Sequence record: ON529850.1 | Reading direction: 5' to 3' (one strand) | Length of the DNA stretch: 64,000 bases | Part shown: one piece after another, positions 2,243 through 33,325 of the stretch | How positions within the stretch are numbered: position 1 is the first letter of the stretch | How the letters are laid out: each line of letters opens with the position of its first letter | Program-made: the position numbers and the translations under genes | The notes under the pieces: model-generated | What the model saw: only the letters and a program-made list of their open reading frames with translations | What the model was told of the DNA's origin: nothing | Database searches by the model: none

Positions 2243-2468
2243 GTGGATCGGAAGGGAGACATTGCCGGCTGACGCGCAGCGGCATCGCCTCCCCTCTTCT
2301 CTCCAGACGCTGCGGACGAACTGAGCGGGACGCCCGCAGCAGCTTCACCGTATGGGGCGGTGGTGAGTCTGTCAACACTTGCGGTCTGTCCGCTGTCCTG
2401 GGACCGAGGACACCTGTAAACATCGCTTTACACTAATCCGGCATAACGCCACAGGAAGGTGACATTCA

Positions 2469-2508
2469 CTCTAACTCACTCTCCTAGATTCCTTACAAAT
2501 CCCCATAA
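2469..2508 (+). repeat. 40-bp direct repeat, copy 2
   Basis: 33/40 identical to 15..54. Confidence 0.85.
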
Positions 2509-2669
2509 CCCTGTTCGGTGGTTGGTTTCAGACTCCGCCGAAAACGGCTACGCCGGGTCCTCTTCAGGTGGGCGGTGGTGTGTGGTGGCGTTATGGAGTC
2601 AGCGCCCGGCGTCTTGTCGGGGCGTCCTCGCTATGATAGTCGGCATTTCTGACATTCGCGAGGACCCCT

Positions 2670-2813
2670 ATGCCCCAGGCCGACGAACACGACCGCGCTG
2701 ATCCGCAGCCGCCGGAGCGGAAGCATGGCCCACGGTGCTGGGGCAGCACGTCCTTTTCGGACGAGATGGCGTATTGCTATTGCGGCGATGAACCGCCGGC
2801 GGACGAGGCGTAA
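2670..2813 (+). CDS. small hypothetical protein (47 aa)
   Basis: SD GAGGA; TAA overlaps next ATG; below ORF-track cutoff. Confidence 0.6.
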   Translation: MPQADEHDRADPQPPERKHGPRCWGSTSFSDEMAYCYCGDEPPADEA

Positions 2814-4816: not shown

Positions 4817-5014
4817 ATGTCGACCCATTTCATGCTCCCGCTGGAAGATCGCCTTGAAACACGCGATCGCGCCGCTGCGCTCCTGGAACGGCATCGCCCC
4901 GAGATCGGCAAGCTGCTGGCGGACGTCCAGGCGTTCGCACAAGACATTCAGTGCGCCCTGGCGGACATCCCGAACGACCGGCTGCGGAATATCGCCTTGT
5001 GTTGCGATCGTTGA
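4817..5014 (+). CDS. hypothetical protein
   Basis: 65-aa helical ORF; weak SD. Confidence 0.6.
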   Translation: MSTHFMLPLEDRLETRDRAAALLERHRPEIGKLLADVQAFAQDIQCALADIPNDRLRNIALCCDR

Positions 5015-22341: not shown

Positions 22342-22862
22342 CAGGGTTTGATCTCTTGCTTGGTCAGGAAGGCTTCGATTTCGGCCGTCCAGGGATTGTC
22401 GGCGCCCTTCTTGTTCAGCAGGGCGAGTTGATCTCCAGCGCTGTAGAGGATGGAGCCCGCTTCATGCAGGGCGACATCCAGCGCCACCAGCCCGTGTAAT
22501 ATTGTTGTCAGTTCATTTTGGCCGAGAAGGGCGCCCGCCCTTTGGAAGCCGGCGCGTTCCCAGGTGCTGAAATGCAGCTGCTCCAGGATAGCGTAGGCGT
22601 CTTTGGCCTGCTCCCGCGCCGCCCTAGACGGATCATAGGACGGTTCCGGCAGGGTGTATCGGACCTGCCGCGCGCCCTTGCCGCCGAACAGCTGCGCGAA
22701 GTGTTTCGCACAGACATAGGCGGTCAGGTTGTGGCGATTGCGCAGCGGGTCGTCGTAAGGAATTTCTTCCCCGACTTTACGCACGGCCGGCGCACCGCAG
22801 CACGCGCAGCGCTCCCCGCGACACGTCACGCTGATGAAGGGTTGCTGGGCAGAGTTGTTCAC
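22341..22862 (-). CDS. hypothetical protein with Cys cluster
   Basis: CRGERCACC..YVCAKHF. Confidence 0.75.
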   Translation of the reverse strand: MNNSAQQPFISVTCRGERCACCGAPAVRKVGEEIPYDDPLRNRHNLTAYVCAKHFAQLFGGKGARQVRYTLPEPSYDPSRAAREQAKDAYAILEQLHFSTWERAGFQRAGALLGQNELTTILHGLVALDVALHEAGSILYSAGDQLALLNKKGADNPWTAEIEAFLTKQEIKP

Positions 22863-23044
22863 GACGGCGCCTCAAGGCGTTGCAGGGTCTTGTAGCGACG
22901 ACGCAAGGCCGCCGCGACTTCCGTGTAGAATTCGACATCGCTGGAAGCGATCTCGGCTTCGTGGCGGTAGTAGGCGTCGCGACCTTTGCGCTTCGCCTCT
23001 TCCAGGCGCGCCAGGGTGATCGCGTAGAGGCGGTGAACCTTCAA
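22859..23044 (-). CDS. hypothetical protein
   Basis: GTGA overlaps. Confidence 0.7.
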   Translation of the reverse strand: MKVHRLYAITLARLEEAKRKGRDAYYRHEAEIASSDVEFYTEVAAALRRRYKTLQRLEAPS

Positions 23045-23634
23045 GGGGTGATCTCCGCCAGGACCGCCTTGCGGTAGGCGATGAACGACGCGATGACCAG
23101 CGCCAGGGCTTCGGTCGGAGCGTGACCAACGCCGTCCAGCTGCCCATACACCCTGGCTTCAGCCGGCGTGGCGGACGGTTCGTCATCGAACTCGATCACC
23201 CGCATGTAGAGGCCCGGAACGATTCGGATCGCCAAGGCGATCGCCGCGTCCACCGAAGCGGTGAACTGCGGGATGCTCTGGTCCAACTTGCTGCCCGCCA
23301 TGAAGGGCGGCCACAGGTCCGTCGCCGTCTTCCACGGTTCGGGAAGGTCGAGAATCTCCGCGATCCGCCAATCCAGCGTGCGCACCGGGCCTTTGGCCTT
23401 GTGAAGGTCCTTCAGAAGGACGTCGATCCGTGCGACCGCTTTGGGCGGATTGTCGTGGAGACGCTTGATCTTCTCGGCGCAGTCCTGGCAGCGGAGCGAC
23501 CGCTTCGCCGCGATATGGCCCGACCCGCAATCATGACATTGACTGACGTAGTCGCCGGGCGCCCAACCATAGCCGATCAGCGCGCGCGGATCGTCCACCG
23601 GCCGGGGTTCTTTGCAATCCTTCAGCGCGATCAT
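23041..23634 (-). CDS. hypothetical protein, Zn ribbon plus phage ABA-sandwich-like segment
   Basis: CHDC..CQDC; PQFTASVDAAIAL. Confidence 0.7.
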   Translation of the reverse strand: MIALKDCKEPRPVDDPRALIGYGWAPGDYVSQCHDCGSGHIAAKRSLRCQDCAEKIKRLHDNPPKAVARIDVLLKDLHKAKGPVRTLDWRIAEILDLPEPWKTATDLWPPFMAGSKLDQSIPQFTASVDAAIALAIRIVPGLYMRVIEFDDEPSATPAEARVYGQLDGVGHAPTEALALVIASFIAYRKAVLAEITP

Positions 23635-23930
23635 TTCGGGTCTTCCCAGGCTTCAGCGCCGCACAGACAGACCCCCTCATTACCGGGGCCGCCGTCGCAG
23701 ATGCGGCAGATACGAGTGTCAGGCTTTACGACAGTCGTGTGTTTTTGGCAACCCGGACAGACGTCCTCGCCGTCGATGCGTTTCCAACCCTGACGCTTGG
23801 CTTCGTCACGCGCCGTCTTGATCGAGCCGCCCCGAGGATTGTCGTTGCGGTCCGACCAGCAGACGAAACCGAACACATCCTCCGGAGAGGGCGTCCGGCG
23901 ATCGCACATGACCTCGACGTAGAGGCTCAT
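23631..23930 (-). CDS. Cys-rich hypothetical protein
   Basis: multiple CxxC. Confidence 0.7.
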   Translation of the reverse strand: MSLYVEVMCDRRTPSPEDVFGFVCWSDRNDNPRGGSIKTARDEAKRQGWKRIDGEDVCPGCQKHTTVVKPDTRICRICDGGPGNEGVCLCGAEAWEDPK

Positions 23931-24811
23931 GTCGCCTGCGCCGAGCCCTTGGCGCGCTCGTTGAAGCCGATGCGATTGAACAGGTCGATCAGGCAGGATC
24001 GGCCGGACCCCACGTCGGTCTTCATCAGCAGGGCGCGGATGTCTGCATCCGGAATCGCCTCCACCAGACTATCGTAGGTATAGGCGCTGTCGCCGAGGGC
24101 GGCGGCCGCCTGGGCGATCATGGCGTCGAGCTGCCCGACGATACGAACGCCGTGGTCGTTGACGCCTTCTTCGTAGGGCGTCCCGATCGGAGACCCGTGC
24201 TTCTGCGTCAGGTAGAGCACGCGGCTGCGTACCAGTCCCAGGACCTGGGCGATCAACACACGCTGACCGCTCAACGCCAGCACCAGGTCTTCTACCTTGG
24301 CGACGATGTCGTCGCACCATTCCGGCGAGCCCTTGTTGGCGGCCAGGAGGAGCGGTTCGATCTCGGTGAGCGCGCGATATTCCGGCGACATCTGGACCTG
24401 CGCCACGACCGATTCGAAGTCTTTGAACGGGTCCTCGTCCGCCGCCGACGGCCGGAGGGCCGCCCCCGCCATGTCGCAGGCGCGTTCAGCCGCCTCGCGG
24501 AACTTTTCATCGCGACTGTCGCACCGGGCGATCCACAGCTTGTCCTGACATTCGCGCAGCGCGGCTTCCAGCGCATCGATTCGCGACTTGCTGTCGTCGA
24601 TCACGCTGGCGTCGTGGACATAGAGCAGAGCGGCTTTCCAGCCCTGGCGCGCCGCGTAGGTCTGTCCGTCCATGAACAGGTAATGGTTGGGATGTTCCGT
24701 CAGGTCATAGTTGTTCTTGCCGGCCCATTTTTCGAACTGAACCTCTTCTCCTTGGCAGTTGCTGAGGATGGACGGATTGAAGGCTCTGCGGGTGTCTTTA
24801 CCGAGGGGCAT
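23927..24811 (-). CDS. hypothetical protein
   Basis: SD AAGGAG before MPLGK. Confidence 0.75.
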   Translation of the reverse strand: MPLGKDTRRAFNPSILSNCQGEEVQFEKWAGKNNYDLTEHPNHYLFMDGQTYAARQGWKAALLYVHDASVIDDSKSRIDALEAALRECQDKLWIARCDSRDEKFREAAERACDMAGAALRPSAADEDPFKDFESVVAQVQMSPEYRALTEIEPLLLAANKGSPEWCDDIVAKVEDLVLALSGQRVLIAQVLGLVRSRVLYLTQKHGSPIGTPYEEGVNDHGVRIVGQLDAMIAQAAAALGDSAYTYDSLVEAIPDADIRALLMKTDVGSGRSCLIDLFNRIGFNERAKGSAQAT

Positions 24812-24827
24812 GAATATCTCCTTCGAA

Positions 24828-25271
24828 TCAGATGTGCGGGGCGGTTTTGATTTTCGCCAGCAGCTCACCGGCGATCACATAGATGTTGTGCGAACTGCGC
24901 TGGGCGCCGTCGGCGCCCGTTTGCCGCCCCAGGTCGATCTGGGTCTCCGCCCGCTGGATCAGGTTCTGCGTCCCCAGGCGATGACGCGGGGGCAGGGCGT
25001 TGGCTTTTTCGGTGGCGACGTCCGAGCGGAAGCCGGCGCGGATGAGCGATTGGGCCACACCCAGCCGGGTCAGGAAGCCGCGCTCGTAATCCTGCATGAC
25101 GCGTTGTTCCGCCCAGGTGAGGTTGATCACCTCAGGCGCGCGGACGCATGCCGACATGGCGGTGAAGATGGCGGCGAAATGCGCCCGCCAGGACGGCTCC
25201 CACGCTTCGGCGACTTCCTCCGCCATGGCTTCAGAAGCGGCGTCCAGCATGTCTTCAGTGATGTCGGTCAA
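24828..25271 (-). CDS. hypothetical protein
   Basis: TTG start, SD GGAGG, after boxed promoter. Confidence 0.75.
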   Translation of the reverse strand: MTDITEDMLDAASEAMAEEVAEAWEPSWRAHFAAIFTAMSACVRAPEVINLTWAEQRVMQDYERGFLTRLGVAQSLIRAGFRSDVATEKANALPPRHRLGTQNLIQRAETQIDLGRQTGADGAQRSSHNIYVIAGELLAKIKTAPHI

Positions 25272-25299
25272 GAGCGTCCTCCGTGTTGTTCACGGGTGT

Positions 25300-25325
25300 T
25301 GTAAAGGAACGCTATCCGCTGTCAA
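25300..25325 (-). promoter_or_regulatory. boxed phage promoter
   Basis: TTGACA-N8-CGTTCCTTTACA. Confidence 0.8.
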
Positions 25326-25328
25326 CCC

Positions 25329-25795
25329 AAAATAAAGAGGCCCGAGCAGTTTCCTGATCGGGCCTCAAGGCGCCGGCGTGAACCGACGCTGCGCCTACCG
25401 TGAGGGGGATCACGGCGACGAAACCTGCTCCTGGGAGTTGAACCCGGCTTTCAGGCGACAAGCCCAAGTGACGTTGATTCGTCTCTCAGGGGGCAGACCA
25501 CGGCGAACCGTAGAAGGCGCCCCTGATAGTCGCCATACAGGTAAAATGGGCTTCCCGTATCAGGCGCTCGTAAGCCCCTGATCCGCCGACCGCGTGAAAA
25601 CGCGGCCACCGCCCCTCTCGACACTTTGCGGCGCCAGAGCCTATCCCCTGAGGGGTCCGCATGGATAGCGCGGTAGCCAGGCGACCCGCCGAAGCGCTGT
25701 CGTTACTCCCAGCCTATTCCTCTGATCTTCCCAAGCCCGTGTGCCGGCCAAGAGATCGACGAGGCCGGGAAACCCCGCCCCGTCGATGGCTCCTT
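25329..25795 (-). ncRNA. candidate large structured RNA (~450 nt)
   Basis: no minus-strand ORF in the track; at least 8 hairpins plus long-range GGGCTT/AAGCCC and GTCGCC/GGCGAC pairs; T-loop-like GGGTTCAACTCCC; ends in terminator GAGGCCCGA..TCGGGCCTC-TTTATTTT. Confidence 0.6.
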
Positions 25796-25849
25796 CTCCC
25801 ACACTTCCATCAGGGTGTCAACGGTCGTTGTGATTTTTGTCAAAAATCT

Positions 25850-25945
25850 TCAGGACGAAACCGACAGAAGAATCGGAAGCCCGACGCCGATGAACAGCGC
25901 CAGGAAAATGACGAAGGAAGTGAGAAATCTCGACAGGGTGCGCAT
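25850..25945 (-). CDS. 31-aa hydrophobic peptide
   Basis: MRTLSRFLTSFVIFLALFIGVGLPILLSVSS; TTGACG upstream; weak SD. Confidence 0.5.
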   Translation of the reverse strand: MRTLSRFLTSFVIFLALFIGVGLPILLSVSS

Positions 25946-25989
25946 ACGCCCACGCTTATCATTCGAGGGGACCGCGTCAAGGCGAATCG

Positions 25990-26085
25990 AAAAGGGCTCC
26001 CGCTTGATCAGCCGGGAGCCCTCCGAATGAGCGCGGATGCCAGCCCGCCACGACCGATGGCACGGAAGACACCCGTTTCGGCCGG
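25990..26085 (-). ncRNA. candidate ~95-nt small RNA
   Basis: TTGACG-N17-CATACT (26120..26092); hairpins; terminator GGGCTCCCG..CGGGAGCCC-TTTT. Confidence 0.6.
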
Positions 26086-26126
26086 ATGTTCAGTATGCCC
26101 TGTCGTGTTTGCCGCGTCAAGAACGC

Positions 26127-26285
26127 AAAAGCCCCCGGCGCGTGGGGCGCCGGGGGCCTGCACGCCCACCGAAGGGCGACACGGCCGTCTGTTAGGACCT
26201 ACTCCACGCGGCGGGTGTGCGCGGTTTCAATCCAGGCGCTGCTCTATAGGAGGTTACCAGCAACGGAGGTGAGCAGCACGACCGG
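26127..26285 (-). ncRNA. candidate ~160-nt small RNA with anti-SD loop
   Basis: TTGACA-N17-CATTGT (26320..26292); stem GCTGCTC/GAGCAGC whose loop holds CACCTCC and ACCTCCT; terminator 26157..26127. Confidence 0.65.
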
Positions 26286-26320
26286 ACCTCCACAATGGCA
26301 AACGCCAGGATCGCTGTCAA

Positions 26321-26722
26321 TCACTGTTGGGAAGAAATTTCGTACTTGGCTTCCAAGAACGAGAGCAAGGCCTCGAAATCTTCGAGAGCAATCTTTCGCA
26401 TCTGAGCGTCTTCTTCAACAAGCGCGCTGTCATGACGCTCTTGCAGGGTGGCGGCGTCTTCGAGTTGACCTTCAGGAAAACGCACGAGATTGCGGCCCGC
26501 GAGCGTATGGATGTCTTCCGGGTAGGGGCAGTCCAACGCGGTGGCGTCCAGGATTGCGTTCTGCTCCGTTGTTAGGAAGGCGCCGATAGCACACGGCCCG
26601 GAATAGGAGGCCGGATCACCTTGCCACGCGGCGTGTTGCTGGGCCTGGAGTCGGCCTTCCGTATAGGCGATCCGAGCCGCCTTCAGGATGTCGGGCATGT
26701 TCAGGTGAATGGTCTCAACCAT
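26321..26722 (-). CDS. hypothetical protein
   Basis: start MVETIHL overlaps upstream stop. Confidence 0.7.
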   Translation of the reverse strand: MVETIHLNMPDILKAARIAYTEGRLQAQQHAAWQGDPASYSGPCAIGAFLTTEQNAILDATALDCPYPEDIHTLAGRNLVRFPEGQLEDAATLQERHDSALVEEDAQMRKIALEDFEALLSFLEAKYEISSQQ

Positions 26723-27260
26723 GTGCGGTGTCGCCTTCGTATTGGTCGGAAATGCAGGGGTGATAGGCCACGATGCCGTAGGCTTCTTCGTTCGACAGGC
26801 GCGTGTCATAGAGCTGTCGCGCCAGCCAGGCCCGGTTGGAATCGATGGTATGTTCGCCGTCGCCGGAAAGGGACCGCGCGGCAGGCGGCGCAGGATCGCC
26901 CAAGCGCGCCTGAATCGCCGACGCGACCGCAAAGAGGATGCGTTCCTGTCTTGTCAGACCTTGGCCTTGATCCGGCGCCAACAGCCCCACCAGGGAATCC
27001 ACCAGGGGCGTGAGCCGTTCCGCCAGCTCCGCCTTCGCCGCCAGTTCGGCTTGCAGCGCATTCGCCTGCTGTTCGAGGCGCTTGGCGCGTTCGGCGTCGC
27101 TCTCGCCAACCGGCCCTGTGCGCAGGTTAGCGATCATCGTCTTGGTCGCTTCCGTCAGCCCCGGATAACGGAAGGCGCGCCGCGCCCAGGGTTGATCTCT
27201 CGCGAAGGCGGGATCGTTCGGATGGAGCGGGATTTCCGGGGACGGCATGTCGCTGTTCAT
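26715..27260 (-). CDS. hypothetical protein
   Basis: SD AAGGAG. Confidence 0.75.
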   Translation of the reverse strand: MNSDMPSPEIPLHPNDPAFARDQPWARRAFRYPGLTEATKTMIANLRTGPVGESDAERAKRLEQQANALQAELAAKAELAERLTPLVDSLVGLLAPDQGQGLTRQERILFAVASAIQARLGDPAPPAARSLSGDGEHTIDSNRAWLARQLYDTRLSNEEAYGIVAYHPCISDQYEGDTAHG

Positions 27261-27412
27261 GGGGTCTCCTTAGGGTGTGGCACGGGCCGATGCAGCTGGC
27301 GGGCAGGATCACGCGCCTGCTTGTCCAGGATGTCGCGCATGGTGGGCTTGAAGGGTTCGCATCCACAGATGACGTGGCTTTGGAACCCGCGCGGGCAGGT
27401 AAGGTCACGCAT
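27257..27412 (-). CDS. small Cys-containing protein (51 aa)
   Basis: hand-translated; coupled both ends. Confidence 0.6.
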   Translation of the reverse strand: MRDLTCPRGFQSHVICGCEPFKPTMRDILDKQARDPARQLHRPVPHPKETP

Positions 27413-28286
27413 CGGCGAGCGCCGAGGCGGCGATGGCGCCGGTGTGCGTTGACATGTCGCGCGCGGTGTTCGCGTTGGCGTTTCTCGGCGATGCTTCGGC
27501 GATCCGTTTCAGGGCGTCCTCATAGCGCGCCACCTTACGGGCCAAGGCGCTCGACAGGATCGAACGGATGGGCTGATCCGCTTCCGACACCTGCGGGCAG
27601 GAGCCGTCCATCAGTTCGCCCGCCGCCGCATAGGTGGCGTCCCAGAAGCGGCCGTAGTTGAAGGTGATCGTCTCTGCGTCGACATGCCCGGCCTTGATGA
27701 TCTCGGTCATGATGATGTCCTGCACGCAGCCGCGCAGCAGCCCGTAGTTGATCCCGATGCAGTCTCCTTCGAGCGCCCGGCTGAGCGCCGCCGCCTGGCG
27801 GAAGGCCAGCAACGGCAAGGCTTCACGAAGGGCCTTGACGGAACTGTCCAGGACGACTTGATAGTCATCGTCCTCCTGGGGGCTGTAGAGCTCCATCACC
27901 TTCACGAAGGGCGCCAGGATTTTGATGACGTCACGCCGCATCGGCAGGTTGATGTCGGTGTCGCCGACGGCGATCTTCGCCGCCAGGCGTTCGATCATAC
28001 GGGCCGCCCGCCATTCCGGCTCTTGCTCCAAGGCCCATTGAACGCCACGCCGGCCGAAACTGCGGTTCGTTTCGAACGAGGCCCTGGCCTTGCGATCCAG
28101 CGCTTCGACATGGGATTTGGCGGTGGGATCGACCACCTTCAGGAGGTGGCCGATGACGGCTTCAGCGGCCTTTTCAAAACCGACCAGATAAAGGCCGGCG
28201 ACGGACGGAGAAAGACCGGATGCGTCGGCCTTGATGTGCGCCTTGAGCACGGCGACCAGTTCTTTTTGCAAAGTCACCCGGCTCAT
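27405..28286 (-). CDS. hypothetical protein
   Basis: ATGA overlap start MSRVTL. Confidence 0.75.
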   Translation of the reverse strand: MSRVTLQKELVAVLKAHIKADASGLSPSVAGLYLVGFEKAAEAVIGHLLKVVDPTAKSHVEALDRKARASFETNRSFGRRGVQWALEQEPEWRAARMIERLAAKIAVGDTDINLPMRRDVIKILAPFVKVMELYSPQEDDDYQVVLDSSVKALREALPLLAFRQAAALSRALEGDCIGINYGLLRGCVQDIIMTEIIKAGHVDAETITFNYGRFWDATYAAAGELMDGSCPQVSEADQPIRSILSSALARKVARYEDALKRIAEASPRNANANTARDMSTHTGAIAASALADA

Positions 28287-28513
28287 GATTTGTCCTTTTT
28301 CACCAGGACATAGCCCTGACGTTCGATTTCCGCGAGAATGGTGCGCGCGTCCCAGAGATGCCCGCTGCGCTCTTGGCTGGAGCAGCGTTCCCAGTTGAGT
28401 TCGCGCAGGTGCTCCAAGGTGTAGGGCATGCCGGCCGGCAGGGGATTGCGCGGGCCGACCAGGCACCGCGCGAAACGGTGTTCCCACTGTTTGGGGGTCA
28501 GTTCGGCGTCCAT
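28283..28513 (-). CDS. hypothetical protein
   Basis: SD GGAAGG. Confidence 0.7.
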   Translation of the reverse strand: MDAELTPKQWEHRFARCLVGPRNPLPAGMPYTLEHLRELNWERCSSQERSGHLWDARTILAEIERQGYVLVKKDKS

Positions 28514-29184
28514 GCGTCGCCCTTCCTCCAGCCGTTCAGGACGGCCTCTTTCGCCTGCGGCAGCGAAGTTTTGTAGAAGGTGCGGTGCGCCTTGATCGTC
28601 GCGATCAGTTCGGCGCCGTGAAGCGTTTTCACGTCACGTTCGCTGATGACATTGCACCCCAGACAGACTCGATCGGCATGATCGGTGCTGCCGCATTCGT
28701 AGCAGGGTTCTGTCCCGGCCTGGGTGTCGACCGCCACTTCCTTGTCCGCCGCGTCATCGCGCAGCGTCACCCAGCGGCCATCCGATTCGATGATCCGCCA
28801 ACCCGAAGCCGGCGCATTTTCGTCTTTCAGGCGATCCGCGAGCTCGATGAAGATGCGCTGGGCATAGGGGACCAGGGCCGAACCCCAGGGGGCGGGAAGC
28901 GCGGCGAACTCATAGGCGCGGCGCAGCAGCAGGTCGTCGAACGATTCGCCCGACGCGCGCGCCGGCAGGTCTCCGATCGGATCGCTGGGATCGTCGTGCA
29001 CCGTGCGCCAGGCTCCGTAGGCGAGCCACTGGAACAGCTGGCGCGCCAGGTCTCCGGTCTCGGCCTCGGTGTAGGTCAGGCCCATCTGTTTCTGGCGCTC
29101 ATCGGCGCGCTGGACGTATTTCTGCTCCAAGAAGAGCCGGATCAGGTCGACCTCGGGGACCATCAAGCGTTCAGCCACGGGCAT
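28498..29184 (-). CDS. hypothetical protein
   Basis: SD AAGGA; CYEC..CLGC near C-terminus. Confidence 0.75.
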   Translation of the reverse strand: MPVAERLMVPEVDLIRLFLEQKYVQRADERQKQMGLTYTEAETGDLARQLFQWLAYGAWRTVHDDPSDPIGDLPARASGESFDDLLLRRAYEFAALPAPWGSALVPYAQRIFIELADRLKDENAPASGWRIIESDGRWVTLRDDAADKEVAVDTQAGTEPCYECGSTDHADRVCLGCNVISERDVKTLHGAELIATIKAHRTFYKTSLPQAKEAVLNGWRKGDAWTPN

Positions 29185-29200
29185 TTCCTTTCATCTGTCG

Positions 29201-29234
29201 CGTTCCTTTACAAGCTCCCTGCACATCCCGTCAA
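29201..29234 (-). promoter_or_regulatory. probable promoter with the 12-bp box in flipped orientation
   Basis: minus TTGACG-N16-TGTAAAGGAACG. Confidence 0.5.
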
Positions 29235-29242
29235 CCACCGTC

Positions 29243-29707
29243 GTGAAATTTGTCGATTCAGAAGGCTTCCGCTATATGGGCCGCATGTCTTTGTCTGAAT
29301 CGAACATTGAGCTCATCCGAGAGGTTGGCGCCGACGCCCTGTTTGACCAGGATTGGTCCTTGTTGGAGGCGTTGCTGACGCGCGCCCGGCAAGAAGGGCC
29401 GGTGGAGGAAGTCCCCGAATCTCCGCCGGAAGACCCGCGCCTGGAAGTGGTCAAAGCCTTCGCCATCCACCATGGTTTCTATAAGGAGAATGGCCGCCGC
29501 CGCCGATTCTATAGTCGATTGGATCGCGGGTCCGTCTATCTGTATGAGACGTTGGGTCGCCGCGATCATCGCCTGGTGGGGCGTGCGGTGGAGACCGGGG
29601 ATTCCTACTTCACCTATCGCGCGGAACCGCTGGCGTCACACGCTGGTAAATCCGTGCCGACCCGTGATCTCATGGCGGCCCTCAACGCCTTGGCGCTGAC
29701 CCTGTAA
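29243..29707 (+). CDS. hypothetical protein
   Basis: 154-aa ORF followed by hairpin; start uncertain. Confidence 0.7.
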   Translation: MKFVDSEGFRYMGRMSLSESNIELIREVGADALFDQDWSLLEALLTRARQEGPVEEVPESPPEDPRLEVVKAFAIHHGFYKENGRRRRFYSRLDRGSVYLYETLGRRDHRLVGRAVETGDSYFTYRAEPLASHAGKSVPTRDLMAALNALALTL

Positions 29708-29710
29708 CGC

Positions 29711-29741
29711 AAAACCCCCGCTGGATCGGCCAGCGGGGGTT
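29711..29741. terminator. hairpin terminator
   Basis: AAAACCCCCGCTGG-ATCGG-CCAGCGGGGGTT. Confidence 0.65.
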
Positions 29742-29837
29742 CGTGCCTGGAAAGGCGATTGCGATCAATGAAGATCACCTCGACCAGCTTGTGCGTCGCT
29801 ACACTCAACCCGTGCTCAGCCTGATCGGACTCCCTGT

Positions 29838-30530
29838 TTGCCAGTTGTTCTGACGATCGTCAACCCCACCGACAGAACTGTTGACTCCTTCAGAGCGTCA
29901 GGGCAGAAAGTCGCCATGATCTACGACCATCCCATGAAACTGGCGCGATCGATGGCGAAGGCCTGCGCCCGACTCAAGTCCCTGGGCTACGCTACAGGTG
30001 CGCTACGTGTCGGCGAGGCGGCCTACTTCAATGTCACGACCGCCCAGGGGCGCTATTTCGAAGTCATCGTCCGGGAAGTTCCCGACGACGAGCAGATCGC
30101 CAATATGAACAAATCGTATCCCGATATTCGGGCCGGCTACGCCGAGCTGGGCGCGATCGACTTCACCGACGTGCAGTCGCGGGAGAAGCCGCCTCAAAAA
30201 GCGTCGATGGAGTTGCGTGAACGTCTGGCGGCGGCCCGAGCGACCGTCAAACCCCAACCGACCGAACTTCTGCGTTCCGCCACGGCGACGGCGTTGCAGG
30301 CGAACGCGCATCTGTCCCACGACGGCGTCGACTATAGCGAATGGCTGCTGCGTGAATGGGCGCATCAGGTCATGACGGTCAATGTGCCGCCGGCCGAAGT
30401 GACGGATCGAGCCAACCTGATCCGCATGACCCACAACGCGATCCGGGACATGTCGAACCAGACGGATTCGTTCCTGAGCGAGGCGCAGGCGCGCAACATC
30501 ACCTTGCTGAAGGAATGGGTGAAGGCATGA
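29838..30530 (+). CDS. hypothetical protein
   Basis: 230-aa ORF; start uncertain (possibly 29916). Confidence 0.7.
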   Translation: MPVVLTIVNPTDRTVDSFRASGQKVAMIYDHPMKLARSMAKACARLKSLGYATGALRVGEAAYFNVTTAQGRYFEVIVREVPDDEQIANMNKSYPDIRAGYAELGAIDFTDVQSREKPPQKASMELRERLAAARATVKPQPTELLRSATATALQANAHLSHDGVDYSEWLLREWAHQVMTVNVPPAEVTDRANLIRMTHNAIRDMSNQTDSFLSEAQARNITLLKEWVKA

Positions 30531-33005: not shown

Positions 33006-33138
33006 CCATGGAGGGACGGCCGAGACGACGTCTCGATCGGTTTAGAGAACCGACGAACTGTCAAGTTTAACTTGACAATTCCGACGATAGTTAAACCGCG
33101 ATAATTTGTGCTTGACCGTCGCATTTCGTTCCTATACA

Positions 33139-33325
33139 TCACCCCTCGTCGCGGCGCCTCCCGCCCCTCCTGACGACGACGGTAAGACGGACCCAGGGGT
33201 GATTTGGAAGGAGGCATCGTAGCGATGAAGGGGTGAGCGGCTGACGCCGAGCGCCCTGCCCGCCGGATTGCCGGCATGAAGGCGGGCTAGTCGATGCGTT
33301 TGGGTTCGACCCCCTGCCGTGACTC
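33139..33325 (+). ncRNA. candidate structured RNA / leader (anti-SD hairpin, 3-way junction, T-loop-like hairpin)
   Basis: TCACCCCT/AGGGGTGA enclosing CCTCCC..CCTCCT loop; GCATCG/CGATGC junction; GGGTTCGACCC. Confidence 0.5.

Follow-up and report, generated by a model that had tools for sequence, protein, structure and literature searches.

We describe here a plausible new phage small RNA with an anti-Shine-Dalgarno (anti-SD) type of seed, candidate sRNA1, known from two closely related phages and with a mechanism that we infer. It lies on the minus strand of vB_BpoS-Gurke (ON529850.1), a Brevundimonas jumbo phage of 321,510 bp, a siphovirus with B. pondensis LVF1 as isolation host; the phage origin assumed in a preliminary description of this DNA is thus confirmed. 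The window analysed, 64,000 nt in length, comprises bases 1-64000 of the record, and its coordinates are those of the record. The second phage, vB_BpoS-Kikimora, is the sole close relative of Gurke among 50,697 phage records and is 95% identical over 25300-26330. We put the chance that the region encodes a real non-coding RNA at roughly two in three (0.65). It is a more tentative proposal, falling a little short of an even bet, that the candidate acts through its CCUCC-bearing loop on translation start regions, as known sRNAs do.

As we picture it, a weak host-type promoter of its own would drive sRNA1, or the RNA would form the 3' end of the GURKE_00650-00610 operon transcript, or both would apply, and its transcription would end at a very strong intrinsic terminator. 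Its most likely action would be antisense pairing of the CCUCC motifs in the loop with GGAG-containing start regions, which would keep ribosomes off. The best candidate targets would be the phage's own genes with a repeated leader ending ...CAACGGAG, rather than all SD-bearing mRNAs. We infer alike the production of the RNA, its pairing in trans and the mRNAs that it would meet. To our knowledge, the regulatory RNAs of lytic phages and of jumbo phages have scarcely been explored, and none has been described for Brevundimonas or Caulobacter phages. Should sRNA1 be made and pair with start regions, it would correspond, on the phage side, to the anti-SD-seed sRNAs found in the order of its host, and a class of phage genes might be switched by this one RNA. 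Hypothetical genes account for 86% of the Gurke CDS (431/499), and the genome paper covers tRNA and tmRNA scans (ARAGORN) without promoter or small-RNA analysis.

The unit opens with a -35 box, TTGACA (26320-26315, minus strand), which overlaps the stop codon of GURKE_00610 and is one of six TTGAC[AG] boxes in the surrounding non-coding island. After a 17-nt spacer there follows a weak -10-like hexamer, CATTGT (26297-26292), and both elements are the same in Kikimora. CATTGT agrees with TATAAT at three of six positions, among them the A at position 2 and the T at position 6, and because it matches at only these three the promoter scan made no call for this pairing of a perfect -35 with a weak -10. 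Between the -10 and the predicted start lies GGAGGU (26291-26286), replaced by GAAGGU in Kikimora. The start was placed ~7 nt past the -10, near 26285, and the predicted transcript of ~160 nt accordingly spans 26285-26126 on the minus strand, its 5' end being taken from the -10 and its 3' end from the terminator.

Four hairpins are predicted in this RNA, whose 162-nt fold has a z of -3.0. The 5' hairpin (26279-26236, 40-44 nt) has a stem of 7-9 bp, in which GCUGCUC (26277-26271) faces GAGCAGC (26245-26239) and which is extendable to 9 bp (26279-26271 with 26244-26236). It closes a 26-nt loop (26270-26245) that holds two ACCUCC copies, at 26270-26265 and 26254-26249, the loop motifs reading CACCUCCG and AACCUCCU. 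Taken alone, this hairpin folds at -15.1 kcal/mol (z = -2.2), and CCUCC is confined to it, both copies sharing the one loop. The second hairpin (26233-26195), with an outer and an inner helix, carries two one-sided changes relative to Kikimora that keep their pairs (U-G/C-G and G-U/A-U). The third (26181-26159), a G+C-rich stem with a UUCGGU loop, is the same in both phages. With regard to the promoter-like hexamers and their 17-nt spacer, the GCUGCUC/GAGCAGC stem, the two-motif loop and the GGAGGU, the preliminary description was accurate, every element that it named being present on the minus strand.

The last hairpin is an intrinsic terminator of 12-13 G+C-rich base pairs (stem 26158-26130) followed by U4 to position 26126, and it also ends the GURKE_00650-00610 operon. 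Its stem folds at -30.7 kcal/mol (z = -4.2), and not one of 200 shuffles was equally stable. Since the plus strand has no T run after the stem, the terminator is functional for the minus strand only. This terminator, 26158-26130 with its U4, did not figure in the preliminary description.

In the folding model of the promoter-initiated RNA (start ~26285) both motifs are predicted to be mostly unpaired, with mean unpaired probabilities for the two CCUCC motifs of 0.70 and 0.92 in Gurke and of 0.80 and 0.79 in Kikimora. A caveat had been attached to the element from the outset, namely that GGAGGU would pair with ACCUCC if transcription started earlier. It is borne out for the Gurke read-through RNA that includes GGAGGU, where the second motif is predicted to be sequestered (unpaired probability 0.01), and lapses for Kikimora, in which the element is GAAGGU and the effect is gone.

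sRNA1 is the first unit of an island (25272-26320, 1050 nt) that contains no credible gene. A single ORF is annotated there, GURKE_00600 on the plus strand, with a GC3 of 55% as compared to 66-82% in its neighbours and an Arg content of 15%; it is unannotated in Kikimora, where the ORF has two 1-nt indels. Codon usage, Arg content and indels all speak against a gene, and the earlier view of the region as non-coding therefore stands. On the minus strand the island has six TTGAC[AG] boxes and on the plus strand none, where ~0.65 would be expected from the window-wide count of 79 per 128 kb of strand (Poisson p ~6e-5). Every one of these boxes comes after the end of a gene or a terminator, which divides the island into four units. 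The second (26120-25989, minus strand) consists of a TTGACG-N17-CATACT promoter, an RNA of ~95 nt and a terminator. The third (25980-25850, minus strand) has a TTGACG box and then a 31-codon hydrophobic ORF (25945-25850) without an SD, and diverges by 3.0% from Kikimora. The fourth (25843-25329, minus strand; divergence 5.6%) comprises a pair of TTGACA boxes, ~470 nt of structured RNA and, at 25366-25337, a terminator with a U tract. The core of this fourth unit (25614-25801) is conserved in five jumbo phages of the Kabachok group and includes one hairpin with four two-sided compensatory pairs; Rfam gave no match for the unit.

Conservation between Gurke and Kikimora was assessed quantitatively with the fourfold-degenerate sites of 13 flanking genes as the yardstick, 127 of these 1053 sites (12.1%) being different. 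Divergence over the whole island is 4.7% (p = 1e-16 against the fourfold sites), and the transcript of unit 2 has no difference in 101 positions (p = 2e-6). The comparison points clearly to purifying constraint on the island, with sRNA1 as its least constrained unit. For sRNA1 the divergence is 6.8% (11/161) against the fourfold 12.1% (p = 0.02), a comparison of little power because only two genomes, ~95% identical, carry the RNA. Its 5' hairpin alone differs at 3 of 44 positions and is not significantly conserved (p = 0.21). The hairpin stem and both ACCUCC motifs are nevertheless unchanged in Kikimora, with two substitutions in the spacer that separates the motifs. Upstream, GURKE_00610 is just 74% identical, and similarity is back to ~95% from the sRNA1 promoter onward. 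The consensus fold of the two sRNA1 sequences has 48 pairs, none of them broken by the 11 differences: four differences lie in helices and in all four the pair is kept by wobble (U-A/U-G, U-G/C-G and, twice, G-U/A-U). These wobble-preserving substitutions therefore fit a minus-strand RNA only.

The main rival to a trans-acting RNA is an ordinary 3' untranslated region with an operon terminator, in which the hairpin would be stabilising or incidental, the ACCUCC copies would be there by chance and there would be no function in trans. We consider this somewhat unlikely. It draws on the frequency of the motif: ACCTCC occurs 40 times in the window as compared to 32 +/- 5.7 expected, and is thus not enriched, while in the first 100 kb 144 hairpins with stems of 6 bp or more carry CCTCC in their loops, against ~190 in shuffles, and seven carry at least two loop motifs, against ~6 expected. 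Since neither the motif nor motif-bearing hairpins are enriched, the arrangement of motif in loop is, taken alone, within chance. A weak -10 that the scan left uncalled is likewise what a plain 3' untranslated region would show, as are a hairpin without significant conservation, a loop spacer already changed in the nearest relative and the lack of homologues beyond Gurke and Kikimora in the collections searched. What does lie above chance is the context, that is the six minus-strand TTGAC[AG] boxes, the strong terminators and the purifying constraint on the island. Against the plain reading there are, in addition, the ~130 nt of structured RNA between stop codon and terminator, where all substitutions at paired sites keep pairing, the slower evolution of sRNA1 overall than of fourfold sites, a conserved TTGACA positioned exactly at the stop codon, and the five further TTGAC boxes and three further, clearly constrained units in the same island.

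Searches for homologues gave the following picture. With Rfam 15 at gathering scores the whole window yielded no match for sRNA1, the output consisting of a tRNA-Arg and terminator-like noise; with E up to 10 over 25200-26400 no family fell on 26126-26320 except terminator-like matches, neither rRNA nor C4 being among them. Comparison by blastn with the 50,697 phage records (25300-26330 with E <=1e-5, and the RNA by itself with E <=10) returned Gurke and Kikimora only. A loop-pattern search of IMG/VR and JGI metagenomes gave no matches, the flanking protein GURKE_00610 had none in IMG/VR, and the unit-4 core, employed as an anchor for further island-bearing phages, gave no matches in IMG/VR and metagenomes. 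A 19-mer of that core in a Spirochaete MAG was set aside as a chance match. The Kabachok-group jumbo phages have the unit-4 core together with a promoter of the class-L type described below, and sRNA1 is absent from them; a weak 61-nt match of 70% identity beside their unit-4 homologue, over a G+C-rich hairpin, was considered as an equivalent of sRNA1 and rejected as not representing homology.

The preliminary description had drawn a parallel with the alphaproteobacterial cuckoo sRNAs. These cuckoo or alpha-r14 sRNAs (RSs0680a-d of Rhodobacter, C14 of Sinorhizobium) consist of two to four adjacent hairpins, each with CCUCCUCCC in its loop, the hairpins measuring 24-50 nt and their loops 9-27 nt; the RNA ends in a terminator, and they have been reported from chromosomes of Rhizobiales and Rhodobacterales, not from phages (PMC4615179). 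With them sRNA1 has in common the alphaproteobacterial setting, an anti-SD-like, C-rich loop motif and a terminator, and its 40-44-nt hairpin and 26-nt loop are within the respective size ranges. Unlike them, it has a single hairpin with two ACCUCC copies and none in its other hairpins. Of the five occurrences of CCUCCUCCC in the Gurke genome, none lies within 26126-26320. Membership of the cuckoo or alpha-r14 group was rejected on account of the single motif hairpin, the absence of CCUCCUCCC and the lack of a covariance-model match, and with the adjacent motif hairpins and the 9-mer that define the group both missing, the parallel reduces to analogy.

A second point of comparison is alphaR8 (SisA-D of Caulobacter crescentus, MmgR of Sinorhizobium), in which a single-stranded 10-mer, UUUCCUCCCU, serves to repress many mRNAs via their 5'UTRs (PMC12559287). 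Here too there are an anti-SD-type seed and a Rho-independent terminator, and alphaR8 comes from the same order as the host, the Caulobacterales. However, the alphaR8 seed lies in a linear stretch whereas the sRNA1 motifs lie in a hairpin loop, and the sequences show no similarity. sRNA1 lacks the defining 10-mer UUUCCUCCCU and was for that reason rejected as an alphaR8 member; the 10-mer occurs once in the Gurke genome, at 4896-4905, within a tail gene on the antisense strand. We read the resemblance of sRNA1 to both cuckoo and alphaR8 RNAs as mechanistic. Hairpin-loop C-rich motifs also initiate pairing with ribosome-binding sites in the C-rich-loop sRNAs of Staphylococcus, RNAIII and others (PMC4615179). 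Their motif is UCCC, in an unrelated lineage and sequence, and the likeness to sRNA1 would again be mechanistic only.

Among phage RNAs, the C4 antisense RNA of P1 and P7 is a small RNA with short exposed segments that mask a ribosome-binding site on a phage mRNA; it is processed from its target's own transcript and has two separate complementary segments. The candidate targets of sRNA1, unlike that of C4, are scattered over the genome, and Rfam found no C4 match in the region with E up to 10.

These candidate targets are best seen against two repeated promoter-leader cassettes of the Gurke genome. The class-L cassette, defined by the search pattern TTGAC.{10,18}[CT]TTTAC, has 25 instances before operons, all at 8-103 kb of the record. 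At 279-312 kb, the class-R cassette stands before ~18 units of one gene each; it is marked by an upstream A-rich tract and a GTTGACAC box, with GTTAACCTTAAC-type palindromes nearby. Many leaders of both classes share a terminal module immediately before the start codon: genome-wide, 27 of the 43 copies of AACGGAG and 21 of the 28 of CAACGGAG directly precede the start codon of an ORF. The Gurke loop, in its first motif and spacer, is complementary to this shared module over up to 11 nt. Eight sites in the genome have at least 10 contiguous nucleotides complementary to the loop, and four of them are on start regions, namely those of GURKE_01560 (11 nt), the DNA primase GURKE_04560 (11 nt), GURKE_05060 (10 nt) and the peptidase GURKE_03350 (10 nt). 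Within the window, exact extended matches did not exceed 10 nt and none lay on a start region.

This complementarity was measured against control loops in which the CCUCC cores were held fixed and the remaining letters shuffled. For 24 class-L leaders there were six matches of at least 8 nt as compared to 1.9 +/- 2.2 in the shuffled loops (p ~0.10), and the longest match, 11 nt, had p ~0.03. Over 1370 candidate start windows, matches of 8- to 10-mers gave p = 0.07-0.11. For 12-mers with at most one mismatch, the Gurke loop scored 7 against 3.0 (p ~0.08) and the Kikimora loop 8 against 3.2 (p ~0.05). Of the switch proposed at the outset for the timing of the phage's own genes, what stands is a suggestive loop-leader complementarity, with p ~0.03-0.11 according to the statistic; significance it does not reach.

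In Kikimora the leaders are unchanged, but two positions of the loop spacer are not, and contiguous complementarity is down to 5-6 nt; with the three CAGCAACGGAG-type leaders the duplex energy is ~7 kcal/mol weaker than in Gurke. Comparison of the Kikimora loop with the Kikimora leaders gave no loop-leader covariation: since the leaders are the same and the Kikimora pairing is shorter and weaker, the extended pairing is not strictly conserved. At each of the two differing positions, however, the base of one of the two phages can pair with the leader in its commonest form, and both loops are consequently at most one mismatch away from a 12-nt match to the same three start regions.

Judged from these matches, the loop might pair with the ...CAACGGAG module of dozens of cassette-driven genes (class L, class R and DNA primase), a specific form of the proposal that we regard as quite unlikely. 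If it were true, one small RNA would switch the translation of a whole temporal gene class, as an RNA counterpart to RegA and RegB of phage T4. The latter are proteins whose targets are start regions in T4's own early mRNAs, and RegB cuts within GGAG; sRNA1 is an RNA, and would do a similar job if this reading of its targets is right.

The chief idea of the preliminary description was a broader one, in which an abundant anti-SD RNA would pair with any GGAGG-type site, of host or phage, and globally remodel translation. We hold this to be very unlikely. Two exposed CCUCC motifs are predicted, as such an RNA would have, and anti-SD-seed sRNAs of the host lineage do repress many mRNAs (PMC12559287). 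Among the 111 genes annotated in the first 50 kb, SD-type sites preceded about half (any 4-mer SD core in 50), but GGAGG itself just 15% (17 genes). A core of 5-6 nt would furthermore have no specificity: duplexes of the loop with the 111 start regions had a median energy of -13.3 kcal/mol, near the -12.7 kcal/mol of intragenic control windows and not discriminating. The anti-SD sRNAs so far characterised have longer motifs, of 9-10 nt (PMC4615179, PMC12559287). With GGAGG in 17 of 111 genes and duplex energies close to those of intragenic controls, a broad block of GGAGG sites finds no computational support.

It is likewise very unlikely that the element is a relic or acts in cis, either as an inverted promoter-leader remnant or as a leader in which an 11-codon mini-ORF (GGAGGU-N6-GUG, 26279-26244) would control read-through of the terminator. 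The plus strand does read CAGCAACGGAGG at 26258-26269, a 12-mer equal to the leader module before many genes, as a remnant would. However, that strand has no TTGAC box, a start codon is first met 24 nt away, where it opens no more than a 36-codon ORF antisense to GURKE_00610, and it is the minus strand that the wobble-preserving substitutions fit. As for the mini-ORF, an SD stands at ideal spacing before its GUG, but in Kikimora this SD is weakened and both changes within the ORF alter the amino acid. Nor does a gene follow the terminator, the next unit having a promoter of its own. A decoy that mimics the 16S rRNA 3' tail and titrates a factor binding it (candidates being the KH domain of the Era GTPase, bS21 and enzymes of 16S 3'-end maturation or cleavage) is the least probable reading and scarcely to be expected: an open loop in which the anti-SD core occurs twice would suit it, as would the several translation-related genes of Gurke (peptidyl-tRNA hydrolase, CCA-adding enzyme, seryl-tRNA synthetase and 29 tRNAs), but beyond the core there is no similarity to small-subunit rRNA (Rfam, region, E up to 10), and Pfam and PHROGs gave the seven proteins neighbouring sRNA1 no function and no family assignment, and no partner protein emerged.

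Whatever the function of sRNA1, the constrained 1-kb non-coding island and the two repeated promoter-leader cassettes are testable landmarks of the phage's transcription programme. Within the island, the sRNA1 loop was also paired computationally with the other units. Among the three tested, the putative 5' end of unit 4 was outstanding, with a predicted energy of -32.6 kcal/mol that 3 of 200 shuffles equalled or bettered.

Unit 4 of the 1.05-kb non-coding island (25329-25843, minus strand) is a ~470-nt RNA with its own TTGACA boxes and its own terminator. Five other Brevundimonas jumbo phages share the core of this unit (25614-25801) at 79-85% identity, and none of them has any annotation there; the counterpart in Kabachok lies at ~2250-2713 (minus strand) in the local coordinates of segment L003. 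Four two-sided compensatory pairs fall within one predicted hairpin of the unit. Since a search of Rfam matched no family, and no match was obtained in IMG/VR, metagenomes or GTDB genomes, unit 4 may be a structured phage RNA that has not previously been described.

The G/A-rich putative 5' end of unit 4 (25772-25804, minus strand) is predicted to form a duplex of -32.6 kcal/mol with the loop (26243-26273, minus strand) of sRNA1, the candidate RNA bearing two anti-SD-type motifs. This value was equalled by 3 of 200 shuffled loops, in a comparison that covered three units and took a presumed start for unit 4. The modelled interaction could represent pairing between two RNAs of the island, or could be due to chance.

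Two further units lie between sRNA1 and unit 4. Unit 2 (25989-26120, minus strand) consists of a promoter, TTGACG-N17-CATACT, followed by a ~95-nt RNA and a terminator, this promoter being the only one called in the region by the promoter scan. Its transcript is the most highly conserved of the island units between Gurke and its close relative Kikimora, with 0 differences in 101 positions, the figure for fourfold sites being 12.1%. In unit 3 (25850-25980, minus strand) a TTGACG box precedes an unannotated ORF of 31 codons, possibly leaderless, which encodes a strongly hydrophobic product, lacks an SD and shows one synonymous and two conservative changes relative to Kikimora.

An annotated CDS, GURKE_00600 (25661-26272), lies over the island on the plus strand and looks spurious. 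Its GC3 is 55%, compared to 66-82% for neighbouring genes, and its Arg content is 15%; the Kikimora counterpart is unannotated and the corresponding region contains two 1-nt indels. Upstream of sRNA1, GURKE_00610 (26321-26722, minus strand) shares only 74% identity with its Kikimora counterpart (39 amino-acid differences), compared to 91-98% for the genes around it. GURKE_00610 marks a mosaic boundary, with its end at the sRNA1 promoter. Elsewhere in the Gurke record, 7.8 kb adjoining the DNA polymerase gene (172373-180194; 22373-30194 in segment L007) carry no annotated feature, and the locus tag GURKE_03270 is absent from the record at this stretch.

At 33110-33230 (plus strand), a second hairpin with two CCTCC motifs in its loop (33146-33176) follows a class-L-like promoter, with GGAAGGAGG located ~40 nt downstream of the hairpin. 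This region is either the ~230-nt leader of GURKE_00740 or another non-coding RNA, and internal SD/anti-SD pairing is possible within it. Divergent TTGACA boxes are found nearby, at 33064 and 33072.

Class L itself, a repeated promoter-leader cassette sought with the pattern TTGAC.{10,18}[CT]TTTAC, has 25 instances at 8-103 kb of the Gurke record, every one ~30 nt upstream of the first gene of an operon (for example 8109, 17328, 25325, 41062 and 63551, minus strand), and a copy is also present in Kabachok (L003, at 269). Another cassette, at 279-312 kb (segments L009 and L010), is common to ~18 single-gene units and combines an A-rich tract, a GTTGACAC box and a near-identical leader and start region. 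Upstream are the palindromes GTTAACCTTAAC / GTTAAGGTTAAC, which look like operator sites. The same cassette occurs likewise in Kikimora.
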